A DNA stretch of 64,000 nucleotides, from contig JAWQFM010000004.1 in assembly GCA_033442325.1 (NCBI GenBank), positions 676,979 through 740,978 on the forward strand, given 5' to 3'. Below the pieces are notes generated by a model, which worked only from the letters and a program-made list of their open reading frames with translations, searched no databases and had not been told where the DNA came from. Below are positions 32,101-44,357 of this stretch, one piece after another (positions within the stretch are counted from its first letter, which is position 1; each line of letters opens with the position of its first letter). Origin of the DNA: Salpingoeca rosetta. Taxonomy: Eukaryota > Protista > Choanoflagellata. The position numbers and the translations under genes were made by a program.

Positions 32101-35100
32101 ATGGAGGAGGAAGGCAGTGCAGTGGAGTTCACAGAGGGAACCCTGTGGGTGCCACACCTGCAGGAAGATGATGTCACTGCACGCAGATCAAAGCCCTCAA
32201 AGCAGCAACAGGAACAGCATGAGCAGCAGCAGCGAGTACTGGCGTTGGACGCTGTTGTGGCGCACCGCGGGCACACCTTGGCCGCCCTCGGCGCTGCCGT
32301 CGATCCCTTGCAAGAGACAGCACACGCCATCTTGCGGTACCTGCGCCTCGCTGCCGAGCTTTCCAACGAAGAGAACGAGGACTACGCTGCAGGTGCATCT
32401 CACCACTTTCCAACGACCACACCATCCACCTCCACAGCAACGGCAACAAGCACGGGCTCCGATGCCGCCGCAACCAGTACCGACGCGAGTGCCACCGCAT
32501 ATCCACCCGCGCCCGACTTCTCCCAGTTTGATGAGTTCTCGCGCGCCCGTGTGGAAGTGGCGCAGCTGTTGGATCAGCTCTTCCCGCTCTTCCACAACCG
32601 CGATGCCCTCCTGGCGCAGGAGATACCGCAGAACACCCCCGTGAAGCAGATCGCGTGGGCGGATGCCGTGGACACGGGCTTCGCCGACACCAACAACACG
32701 CAGCAACCGGCACCAGGCATGCAGGTGTACGGGTCATCAAGCACCGACAACAACGACGCTGCCAAGGACACAACCGTGACCGCAGCACAGCAGGCGGAGG
32801 GCACTGACAGCAGCCCGTCTTCATTCAACACGCCCCCGATGCCGCTCCGCGCATCTCTGCTGGAGCGCAACGAACGCCTCCTGCTGGTGGATGGCGATGA
32901 GCTCACCGCACACGACGTCTTCCTGCGCGACCGCCACGACGACTACGACAACTCCGCCAACGACCCCGCGTGGCAAGAGCTGTACACGAAGGCAACGCAC
33001 CTGGAGAAGCTCGTGTACACGTCCTGCGCCGTCAACGAGCGGCCCGCCGTCTCCCTGCCGTCCATCTTGCACGACGCGCACGACCAGATTGGTGCGCTCC
33101 TTCGCAGCGCGCGAAACGGCACGCTGGCAGCAGGCGGCACCCGCGACGCCACCAGCACCGCCAGTGGTGTCGATGGTGACGATGCGTGCGGGCTGCTCGA
33201 TGCACTGCGCATCACGGGCCAGGGGTGCGAGTTCCACGCTGTCGACCCGCCAGTCATCGCCCTCTCTGCCGTGGAGTACCTGCGTGGCCGCGATGCGAGG
33301 GAGGTTCGCGTGGACCGCATCTGCACGGACTACAACGGCCTGCGGTTTGTGCGCCTCGTCTTTGTCGCCAACGAGGACGAGTTTTCCTCGCCGCTCTCTG
33401 CGCTTGGCAATGGCAGTGGTGACGGCCAGACACGTGCGGGCGACACAGCAGACACAGCCGCCACCGGCACAGGTGTCGACGGTGCGACTGCGAGGATGCA
33501 TGACATGCAAGTCGGCACGTCGGAGATCACGAACGCGGCCACGCTGCAGCGGCTCTCGTTCAGCCCCATCGACAGCCAGACCACCACAGAGGTGTCATTT
33601 GACACGCAGGCCGTGTTCTGGTTTGCCACGCGGCTCTTTGGCGAGGCAGCAGCAAACACACAGCACGCTGGTGGCGGCGGTGGTGGTGGTGATGACGAAC
33701 CGCTGTCGCTCATTGCGCCGTCCACCCTCCTCTCCGTCTTCGCCCCAAAGGTGTGCGTGTGTGTATTTGCGTGTGTTTGCGTGTGTTTGCGTGTGTTTGC
33801 GTGTGTTTGCGTGTGTGTGTGTGTGTTGTGTGTGTGTGTTTGCGTGTGTGTGTGTGTTTGTGTGTGTGTGTTTGTCGTGTGTGTGTGTGTTTGTGTGTGT
33901 GTGTGTTTGCGTGTGTGTGTGTGTGCGTGTGTGTGTGTGTGCGTGGGTCTCTGTAAGGGCGTTCACACCAATGCAATACGTCAACACTCACCACCTCATC
34001 TCTACCACCACTACCACCACTCCTCCTGCGCAGGGCCCCATCTGCTTCAACGTGACGCCAGCATACGACATCCCACTGCTCGACTTCCTCCACGACCGCA
34101 GCGTTGCGCCGCACGTGACAGATGCCGCCGCCGCCCAGCTCGCGCTCACATCCATGCTCCTCCTCATCGATGACGCTTCAGGTGTGTGTGTGTGTGTGTG
34201 TGCGTGTGTTTGTGTTTGTGTGTTTGTGTGTTTGTGTGTGTGTGTATTTGTGTGTTTGTGTGTTTGTGTTTGTGTGTGTGTGTGCGTGACAACCACCGTT
34301 GTATATGTGTGTATGTGTGTTAAGCTTGTTTGCGTGGAATTCCACACTACTCACCCCCTTCCTCGCATGCCCAATTCCCACCGCCCACGAGCAGGTTCCG
34401 GCATATCCGTGTGCAGTCAACCGCCGCCGCCACCGACAGCAGCCGACAGCAGCGGTGGGGGCGTGTTTGCCGTCCACAACGTGTCGCTGTTCCGCAACCC
34501 CGTCGAGTTTCTTGGCGGCGACACGGTTGTGCTTGGCTGGCGGTCTCCGCTCTGGTGCTGCGAGTGGCTGCTCAATCTCCCCATCCCCCACGCGCTGCGT
34601 CGTCGCATTGCACATGTGGCGCCCGCGTGTGTTCTCCTCCGCTGGCTCGGCGACATGCAGATGGCGCAGGGTAGGACTGGGACGTGTGGTGGTTTGAGCG
34701 GAGAGACTGGCCTGGCTGCGTGTGCTTGGGGCGGAGAGTCTAGACATATTCACATGCAATTCGTGCCCATACGCTTACACGCACACACACACACACGCAC
34801 ACACACACAAACACACACACACACACACGCACGCACGTACTCACACACACACATACACACACAAACATACACACACACACACCTTTGTCTGTGTTCCAGA
34901 TGAGGTGGACAACCTCTCCTCGCAGGATGCGCTGCCGCTTGACGTGGATGTGTTTTCGCAAAGCATTCGGCCCGGTGTGATGATCCGTGTGCACCGCACG
35001 TTTGTACGCATGCACAACATTATTCGCTCCAACGGCGACATCACCATCGGCCAGCTGCTGCAGAGGTGAGAATGCGACAGCGCGTGCTTGCTTTGTTGTG

Positions 35101-44100: not shown

Positions 44101-44357
44101 CACATGCGGCGACGGACGTGAGTGGTATGGCCAAGCACCACCAGGCAGCGATGCGCGCGCGCTCACAGACGTTCCAGCTGCTTGCGCGTGTTGATCGCGT
44201 GGCCCCACCGGCTGTGCCACCACGGCACTCCACGATGGCATCTCGCGCTCGCAACGTGCAGCGGGCACGCTTGAACAGCAACCGCGTGAGCAGAGCACCA
44301 CGGCAGGGCCGCACGCTGAGCACAACCGTGGAGGAAGGGGACGATGCCATGGCATGA
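32101..44357 (+). CDS. Giant multidomain non-receptor tyrosine kinase: unknown N-terminus, ankyrin-like, atypical (PI3K/PI4K/HipA-like) kinase-like, LRR, TBC1D24-like TBC, tyrosine kinase
   Basis: About 18 exons join in phase from ATG 32101 to TGA 44357. TK motifs [48 protein letters not shown]; TBC motifs [30 protein letters not shown]; [15 protein letters not shown]; ANK GTTPLH..GADVD..GMTP. Confidence 0.85.
42955..43120 (+). repeat. (GTGTT)n pentanucleotide microsatellite in a kinase-domain intron
   Basis: Perfect tandem GTGTT run of about 165 bp. Confidence 0.95.

Follow-up and report, generated by a model that had tools for sequence, protein, structure and literature searches.

Structure and transcription of the gene

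We analysed a 64,000-nucleotide stretch of the genome of the choanoflagellate Salpingoeca rosetta (assembly GCA_033442325.1, contig JAWQFM010000004.1, positions 676,979 to 740,978 of the forward strand), which is referred to here as the window and numbered from its first nucleotide. At 32101-44357 the window holds one expressed plus-strand gene, whose 19 exons give a coding sequence (CDS) of 8,187 nt that specifies 2,728 amino acids (aa) and a stop codon. From its N-terminus, the encoded protein consists of a region of unknown fold, a kinase-like domain (PKL1), ankyrin (ANK) repeats, a second kinase-like domain (PKL2), a helical region, leucine-rich repeats (LRR), a serine/glycine-rich linker, a TBC domain, a serine/threonine-rich linker, a tyrosine kinase (TK) domain, and a low-complexity tail. 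(Orthologs from other choanoflagellates, among them that of Microstomoeca roanoka, P0164, are described further below and are drawn upon here for the gene model.)

RNA reads and contigs were aligned to the window over 36600-42560. Exons 9 to 16 are joined in two spliced, intron-free Logan contigs, X4 (6,121 nt) and X5 (8,649 nt), that come from two independent studies and that both extend beyond both ends of the read-aligned stretch. The segments joined are 36646-37387, 37661-38994, 39171-39205, 39361-39778, 40012-40120, 40372-40460, 40705-40836, and 41124-42560. With the contig-derived edges moved to canonical GT-AG sites, exon 9 (36650-37388) carries an ANK repeat and the N-lobe of PKL2, with its lysine in the motif WISFK at 37139-37153, and exon 10 (37662-38994) carries the PKL2 catalytic loop (37664-37693) and the motif VDNERCF (37730-37756) and continues through the helical region into the LRR, the greater part of which lies in this one exon with the C-lobe of PKL2. 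A 35-nt mini-exon within the LRR (exon 11, 39171-39205) is followed by exon 12 (39361-39778), with the final LRR units and a linker rich in serine, glycine, and alanine. The TBC domain starts in exon 13 (40012-40121, with the motif GLPPSLRG) and continues through exon 14 (40373-40459, DIWLRLTGG) and exon 15 (40700-40837, MLELTRSFF) into exon 16 (41125-42653), a single open exon in which the C-terminal half of the TBC domain (with YCP at 41130-41147), the serine/threonine-rich linker, and the N-lobe of the TK follow one another without interruption. The remainder of the TK is encoded by exon 17 (42827-42950), which contains the catalytic loop HRDLAARN and is 88% identical to M. roanoka, by exon 18 (43286-43418), which contains DFG and PIKWQAPE and for which there is Pfam and ortholog evidence, and by exon 19 (43658-44357), which holds the end of the C-lobe, the low-complexity tail, and the stop codon at 44355-44357. 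When exons 9 to 19 (36650-44357, eleven in all) are joined, they read as an open frame of 5,346 nt that ends in a single stop; over the whole model, all 18 introns are of the GT-AG type and the CDS is open, its sole stop being the terminal one.

Stranded raw RNA reads (run X21) cover exons only, in a single orientation, and cross four of the joints. The joint between 39778 and 40012 is crossed by 17 raw reads, and the two joints that flank the mini-exon (38994 to 39171 and 39205 to 39361) are present in X21, X4, and X5 alike. A DNA-like run (X1) contains intron sequence too, where this is non-repetitive.

Exons 1 to 8 were modelled with an exon-chaining script followed by ortholog-guided refinement. 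Chaining gave exon 1 as 32101-33750, followed by six small exons that reach to 36394, and comparison with the M. roanoka ortholog shifted one acceptor to 34395. Exon 1 begins with the ATG at 32101, the first in frame after a stop at 31969, and encodes the N-terminal region and the start of PKL1; residues 29-463 of the M. roanoka protein align to 32248-33738 within it, and its word share is 1.00 in runs X5-X7 of study P3 (X5 being the run with the spliced contigs). Exons 2 (34034-34181) and 5 (35295-35361) come from chaining and the ortholog, the start of exon 3 (34395-34670) is the one refined with M. roanoka, and exon 4 (34900-35065) is 63% identical to P0164. Exon 8 (36153-36394) ends with the first ANK motif, GTTPLHQ; the loose 5' ends of the X4 and X5 contigs before 36646 read as the end of this exon, and five orthologs give tblastn matches to it. 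Exon 6 (35567-35721) and exon 7 (35848-35984, placed by the ortholog and by length arithmetic) are separated by 35722-35847, which is tentatively assigned as an intron. Contig X5 carries about 2,847 nt 5' of 36650, and because removal of 35722-35847 leaves 2,841 nt of CDS before 36650, matching the contig, this stretch is probably an intron. (It is a 126-nt in-frame GT-AG stretch that reads as threonine/asparagine-rich low-complexity sequence, and the M. roanoka ortholog has a gap there.) Three exons of the first chained model within 39280-41131 were dropped, the RNA joints having given different exons.

We considered whether the long reading frame might be an artefact of permissive splice sites, with the locus holding two or more separate genes, for example one for the ANK, kinase-like, and LRR part and another for the TBC and TK. 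The chaining script is forced to a single path, such paths often exist in GC-rich DNA, and read depth is greater over 41177-42560 than over 36600-38400. However, the two independent spliced contigs run unbroken from 36646 to beyond 42560, with exon 8 at their loose 5' end, four complete ortholog reading frames come from single transcripts, and half of the TBC domain shares an exon with the N-lobe of the TK. An assembled contig is by itself no proof of a single transcript; we nonetheless read the locus as one transcription unit because a continuous reading frame and the reading frames of the orthologs back the contigs, and separate genes seem to us exceedingly improbable.

An initial annotation of this locus, made from the letters alone, had proposed a single protein chain in excess of 2,000 aa, made from a transcript that crosses the LRR, TBC, and TK parts. 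The spliced contigs from two studies, the open CDS, and the collinear orthologs bear this out; transcripts that end between these parts would have refuted the proposal, which the RNA aligned over 36600-42560 did not do, and the domain order and coordinates proposed at that time all fall within about 100 bases of the present model. The absence of a transmembrane (TM) segment or signal peptide, also claimed then, agrees with what we see: no 19-residue stretch reaches typical TM hydrophobicity (maximum Kyte-Doolittle value 1.58, by a crude test), and the N-terminus is acidic, as expected if there is no signal peptide.

The tyrosine kinase domain

The TK domain (aa 2286-2566 approximately) occupies 42279-43868 on the plus strand and is split by three introns. 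Four exon pieces match the Pfam family PK_Tyr_Ser-Thr (PF07714) with E values of 1e-10 to 2e-18 and together cover profile positions 3-254 of 258. The motifs GxGxxG, VAxK, HRDLAARN, DFG, and PIKWQAPE are intact in the window protein and have equivalents, with conservative substitutions, in all four orthologs. When the M. roanoka domain was compared with the Protein Data Bank (PDB), its top 60 matches were all tyrosine kinases (E 1e-78 to 3e-51), with EGFR, a Src/Abl ancestor, FGFR, IGF1R, InsR, and ROS among them. The Pfam coverage, motifs, and PDB matches agree with the earlier description of this TK as intact, and we predict from its sequence that the domain is catalytically active.

The TBC domain

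The TBC domain (39762-41675, plus strand; aa 1784-2084) was less readily recognised by Pfam: in the window protein the C-terminal half alone scores 23.2 bits against RabGAP-TBC (PF00566), below the cut-off of 25.2, which is exceeded by the orthologs from M. roanoka (33.5 bits) and Choanoeca perplexa (P0166, 27.5 bits), over profile positions 2-211. A profile built from five sequences found Skywalker (5HJN/5HJQ) as its best PDB match, over nearly the whole domain, at E 1.8e-14 (the next TBC domain was at 7e-11), and eight of its nine matches at E<=1 were TBC domains. A three-sequence profile likewise ranked Skywalker first, and the Atlas features of this region point to TBC families. The structure 5HJN is the TBC domain of Skywalker, the Drosophila ortholog of TBC1D24, and TBC1D24, which binds 4,5-phosphorylated phosphoinositides in a pocket, lacks the residues of a GTPase-activating protein (GAP) (PMC7689082). 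On these profile comparisons the description "TBC1D24-like" applies to the TBC domain alone. Note that Pfam gave no match to TLDc after the TBC in window exon 16 or in the whole of P0164 and P0166, the TK standing there instead.

The glutamine finger of TBC domains, YxQ, is replaced in all five species, by YCP in four of them and by FCP in S. urceolata. At the position of the arginine-finger motif, IxxDxxR, the window protein has SMLELTR, with glutamate in place of the aspartate and the arginine present. In human TBC1D24 the cationic pocket is formed by Q33, R40, K238, R242, R293, L294, and R297 (PMC7689082). By our own tentative transfer of this numbering, four of the five species have basic residues where R40 and K238/R242 align, and the window protein has histidine where R293 does.

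That the domain might nevertheless be a working RabGAP, which by way of the surviving arginine would inactivate a Rab at the time that the TK is signalling, has in its favour that ExxRSF stands at the IxxDxxR position in both the window protein and M. roanoka, that C. perplexa also has the arginine, and that two orthologs exceed the RabGAP-TBC threshold. On the other side, the YxQ glutamine has become proline in all five species, two of which have lost the arginine as well; Skywalker/TBC1D24, the nearest relative of solved structure, is without GAP residues, and TBC classes that lack the arginine or the glutamine are recognised, TBC1D24 among them (PMC3655817). Overall, we hold a working RabGAP to be quite improbable. 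Because the catalytic glutamine is missing in 5 of 5 species, "RabGAP", as the domain had been named, probably overstates its activity; the likeness to TBC1D24/Skywalker stands by profile, and the domain is probably not a canonical dual-finger GAP.

Two PI4KII-like folds and the adjoining repeats

PKL2 (36827-38242, plus strand; aa 1007-1387 approximately) has an atypical kinase fold resembling that of the type II phosphatidylinositol 4-kinase PI4KII-alpha. A 49-sequence alignment of PKL2 was used to obtain an AlphaFold (AF2) model of the Salpingoeca infusionum ortholog, with a pLDDT of 89.6. The best rows of a Foldseek search with this model were type II PI4-kinases, and VIA, a search independent of Foldseek, aligned the model to PI4KII-alpha (4HND/4PLA) with Z 16.9 over 243 residues at a root-mean-square deviation of 3.4. 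The structures that came next were actin-fragmin kinase (Z 12.8) and CotH (12.7), and then PIKKs, Vps34, PI4KIII-beta, Fam20, MavQ, and HipA. At the level of sequence, PKL2 had no Pfam match at E<=1, PF00454 included, and its profile no PDB match at E<=10. The Atlas neighbours of the PKL domain include LepB_N and PI3_PI4_kinase clusters and are bacterial.

The family consensus of PKL2 reads FK / NPEDGKPDNYI / IDNDHAF, which we take to parallel the catalytic motifs of type II PI4-kinases. The window protein keeps the lysine (ISFK), the catalytic-loop aspartate (PED), and the metal-binding aspartate (VDNERCF). The catalytic-loop asparagine is replaced by aspartate in the window protein and in M. 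roanoka and by glutamine in three other members of the clade. C. perplexa has the full consensus, and S. infusionum lacks the lysine, the asparagine, and the metal-binding aspartate.

One reading of these findings is that PKL2 is an active lipid or protein kinase of the PI4K type, in which case the protein would be a two-enzyme membrane scaffold that couples lipid and tyrosine phosphorylation. The Z score of 16.9 to PI4KII-alpha, the full consensus in C. perplexa together with the lysine and both aspartates in the window, and the LepB_N and PI3_PI4_kinase clusters among the Atlas neighbours would all fit such an activity. In contrast, the substitution of the asparagine in the window, M. roanoka, and three others and the absence of three residues in S. 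infusionum form a pattern of drift towards a pseudokinase, and PI3_PI4_kinase is not matched in Pfam. We therefore regard an active PKL2 as possible, if doubtful; judging from its motifs, PKL2 may phosphorylate lipid or protein with weak or altered activity, or may serve as a scaffold of the pseudokinase type.

PKL1 (33205-35334, plus strand; aa 369-760 approximately) is a degenerate N-terminal copy of the same fold. When the N-terminal regions of the orthologs were compared with the PKL2 family profile, hhalign gave a probability of 99.9 (E 4.4e-37, 282 columns). In the choanoflagellate clade LIDDAS and VHNVSLF stand in place of the catalytic motifs, and PKL1 is on this account a predicted pseudokinase. 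The protein thus contains three kinase folds, of which PKL1 is dead, PKL2 doubtful, and the TK intact. The single atypical kinase-like domain of the initial annotation is real as a fold and is PI4KII-alpha-like; it is, however, present in two copies, the degenerate PKL1 having been missed. In the genome from which the window comes (68 contigs, 55.4 Mb), the PKL profile found the gene in the window and two weak places, at 1291732-1291968 (plus strand) of contig C2 (L003, E 1e-8) and at 555638-555820 (minus strand) of contig C16 (L004, E 4e-4), either of which is a possible paralog or remnant.

About two ankyrin repeats (36374-36823, plus strand; aa 941-1005), split by an intron, lie between the two PKL domains. 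Ank_2, Ank_4, and Ank are the top-ranking Pfam families for this region in the window protein and its orthologs, with E values of 0.004-0.04 that fall below the cut-offs, and Ank is significant (E 2e-8) in P0008, a distant family member. The leucine-rich repeats (38642-39446, plus strand; aa 1521-1678) are of a cysteine-containing, RNI-like type; LRR_6 and LRR_4 reach E 0.03-0.0001 in the window protein and orthologs, again below the cut-offs, and LRR_6 is strong (E 1e-15) in another distant member, P0006. The ANK and LRR assignments made earlier therefore hold as to the families, which rank first at the places expected, but in the window protein itself they stay below the thresholds. (Pfam run on the raw open frames recognised the TK and a sub-threshold TBC half only, and did not recognise the ANK, the kinase-like domains, or the LRR.)

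Orthologs and origin of the N-terminal module

An exhaustive HMMER search with exon 37661-38992 as the query found 369 relatives, and a second search was made with the TBC-TK region of one relative. Four complete open reading frames were obtained, each from a single transcriptome contig and each with the domain order seen in the window: P0164 of M. roanoka (2,501 aa, 60.5% global identity to the window model), P0166 of C. perplexa (2,159 aa, 33.7%), P0003 of S. infusionum (2,226 aa, 31.5%), and P0005 of S. urceolata (2,336 aa, 29.3%). By tblastn, each of them aligns with the window in collinear order; for M. roanoka, residue 29 lies at 32248 and the last residue at 44354. In the second protein search, within its length window and word filter, the only proteins that spanned TBC and TK together were from choanoflagellates. 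Judged by these sequences, PKL1-ANK-PKL2-LRR-TBC-TK is the layout of a conserved family found in at least five craspedid choanoflagellates, and the form with both TBC and TK appears to be restricted to choanoflagellates. That the layout is conserved in at least five craspedid species argues that the family is under selection and is no one-off accident of a gene model. The layout is already present, unnamed, in public transcriptomes and is not peculiar to the S. rosetta genome.

A further group of proteins of about 2,900 aa (P0152-P0163, from ENA and Logan assemblies) scored about 1,000 bits, with alignments that take in no more than about 35% of the query, namely its TK portion. From their sequences they appear to carry several tandem tyrosine kinase domains.

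Among the 151 family proteins from the first search, TBC and TK are present in P0003 and P0005 only, and the rest consist of the PKL-ANK-PKL-LRR core. The core-only proteins include some from metagenome-assembled genomes (MAGs) of Paracaedibacteraceae, Alphaproteobacteria, and Pseudomonadota, with matches down to E 1e-35. Because the core module stands alone in bacterial MAGs and in Mylnosiga fluctuans, it looks from the sequences as if a TBC-TK cassette was added C-terminally to an older PKL1-ANK-PKL2-LRR module. The Mylnosiga protein (P0019, 1,751 aa), a kinase-like/LRR core without TBC or TK, represents either the ancestral state before fusion or a paralog.

A maximum-likelihood tree built on PKL2 places the five proteins fused to a TK, together with two unlabelled fragments, in one clade (95/99); the rows labelled as choanoflagellate all lie on one side of a 98/96 branch and those labelled as bacterial MAGs on the other. 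Note that most rows of this tree are without a taxon label, and that we claim no direction of transfer.

The bacterial relatives raise the question of whether the PKL-ANK-PKL-LRR part could be a recent bacterial insertion, or a contaminant fused in silico to a TBC-TK gene. In line with such an origin, those homologs of the module that carry a name come from bacterial MAGs, and the Atlas neighbours are bacterial. The module in the window is, however, broken by GT-AG introns and spliced in RNA; moreover, the transcriptomes or genomes of five choanoflagellates contain it, and the choanoflagellate sequences form a clade of their own apart from the labelled bacteria. Both versions of this explanation are in our estimation very improbable.

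Among the bacterial MAG proteins, P0014, P0007, P0011, and P0013 are of 1,900-2,300 aa and have the PKL-ANK-PKL-LRR layout; for one, the annotation is patatin-like phospholipase. Paracaedibacteraceae are symbionts of amoebae, and given this symbiosis the MAG proteins with this layout would be candidate effectors.

Proposed role of the protein

Taken together, we favour, with a probability of roughly 0.8, the reading that the gene encodes one soluble protein of about 2,728 aa with the domain order given above, a TBC domain that is not a GAP, and the TK as its output. The data establish how the gene is built, that it is transcribed, what its domains are, and that they are conserved between species; the division of tasks among the domains is inferred. 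In such a protein the TK would be the active output, and the TBC, its trans-glutamine lost, would serve as an address tag that binds a Rab or a phosphoinositide, as in Skywalker/TBC1D24, rather than as a GAP. The ANK and LRR would bind partners, PKL2 would act as a weak or altered kinase or as a scaffold, and PKL1 would be a pseudokinase. The role best supported by these results would be that of a cytoplasmic TK addressed to membranes or Rabs, and the earlier idea of a hub between phosphotyrosine signalling and Rab trafficking would be a reasonable one.

Several observations weigh against this reading. Exons 1-8 are model-based over 32101-36600, the aligned reads lying further 3'. RNA depth increases in the 3' direction, with several times as many reads beyond 41177 as ahead of 38400, and five RNA read starts are stacked at 42139, in the linker that immediately precedes the TK domain; the pile at 42139 and the 3' depth may reflect 3' bias or an internal start that gives a short, TK-only isoform. 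The structural work on PKL2 and on the TBC was done on orthologs as proxies for the window protein, of which neither protein search returned an annotated sequence. Prediction of the TBC structure from a five-row alignment was of low confidence (pLDDT 58.7), and although Skywalker and other TBC domains led a Foldseek search with that model, they did so at E 0.03-0.4, which is consistent with the assignment and is no evidence for it. Finally, residual GAP activity is conceivable because the finger arginine survives in three species, being kept in the window protein, M. roanoka, and C. perplexa and lost in S. infusionum and S. urceolata.

It seems unlikely that PKL2 is an active PI4K-type kinase, that on the same membrane the TBC recognises a Rab or 4-/4,5-phosphorylated phosphoinositides, and that the TK fires there, all in one protein. 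If this were true, one polypeptide would constitute a self-contained lipid-to-phosphotyrosine relay, whose foundation would be a kinase-like family, absent from the Pfam models, that is common to choanoflagellates and bacterial MAGs.

Neighbouring genes and repeats

An AT-rich dip lies at 31.5-32.0 kb, ahead of the start codon. The long open frames that the plus strand carries from 32.1 to 44.4 kb alternate with gaps rich in microsatellites: many of the gene's introns hold repeats of the types (GT)n, (CA)n, and (GTTT)n (37413-37583, 39013-39075, 40149-40243, and 40558-40695), and the intron between TK exons 17 and 18 holds a 167-nt minisatellite (42955-43121) of about 11 copies of a 15-mer. 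Upstream of the gene are serine carboxypeptidase (Peptidase_S10) fragments at 24000-25553 (plus strand, E 5e-49) and 28306-29115 (minus strand, E 4e-29). Downstream are separate genes, with a frame containing an acyl-transferase domain at 47835-50102 (minus strand, E 2e-9) and a DUF5074 frame at 50418-51800 (plus strand, E 3e-8). The flanking genes are unrelated to the TK-TBC gene.

Comparison with known systems

Choanoflagellate TKs provide the main view of how phosphotyrosine signalling was wired before animals, and most of their lineage-specific architectures are without an assigned function. Here a TK that is predicted to be live stands beside two modules of membrane identity, a TBC of the TBC1D24 type and a fold of the PI4KII type, which yields a testable idea of its site and substrate. 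The locus also exposes a widespread kinase-like family, absent from Pfam, whose nearest solved relative is PI4KII-alpha. With S. rosetta as the host, the gene is open to direct tagging and knockout.

The initial annotation had further held that a TK joined to a TBC and a second kinase fold was not known. In the searchable literature we found no paper in which a TBC domain and a tyrosine kinase are brought together for choanoflagellates, and none that describes this layout; the combination is, however, conserved in at least five choanoflagellates and present in public transcriptomes.

Skywalker/TBC1D24, of the TBC-K class, is the best solved match to the TBC of this family. The finger reads Y-C-P here and Y-S-P in Skywalker, and the lysine and arginine of G-x-K-x-x-Y-R here correspond tentatively to K238/R242 of the lipid pocket. 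The two differ in that TLDc follows the TBC in Skywalker/TBC1D24, whereas here the TBC lies between the LRR and the TK, and in that the third pocket arginine is a histidine here (by tentative alignment).

TBCK, of the TBC-G class and found across eukaryotes, likewise unites a kinase fold and a TBC in one polypeptide. Its kinase does not belong to the TK group, and a rhodanese domain follows its TBC. In TBCK the kinase is N-terminal to a TBC of another class (PMC3655817), whereas here the TK is C-terminal to a TBC1D24-like TBC, so that the distinction from animal TBCK drawn in the earlier account was well founded. The paper on TBC evolution notes kinase-TBC proteins in the TBCK arrangement only (PMC3655817), and the S. 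rosetta kinome lists one TBCK, PTSG_06925, separately from the TK families (PMC4054682).

PI4KII-alpha/beta are the closest solved folds to PKL2 and have the lysine, catalytic-loop, and IDN-type motifs in the same order. Identity to PKL2 is about 10%, and differences are the tandem duplication of the PKL and the substitution of the catalytic-loop asparagine in the choanoflagellate clade. Of the Legionella PI-kinase effectors LepB, AnkK/LegA5, and MavQ, MavQ reaches Z 9.6 to PKL2; the relation to LepB and MavQ is one of fold only. The giant bacterial ANK/kinase-like/LRR proteins share the PKL1-ANK-PKL2-LRR module but have neither TBC nor TK.

The choanoflagellate families HMTK, CTKA/B, FYTK, and UTK resemble the window protein in that each is of the TK group with a domain combination unseen in animals; in the searchable texts, no TBC or PI4KII-like domain is mentioned for them. 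The UTK and TK-Unique families of S. rosetta are without diagnostic receptor or cytoplasmic domains (PMC4054682), and UTK families are defined by the absence of SH2, SH3, and PH domains and of TM and signal features (Table S6 footnote, PMC4054682), all of which the window protein likewise lacks. Built on a kinase-like family for which we found neither a Pfam model nor a description, the gene in the window is a further lineage-specific premetazoan tyrosine kinase.

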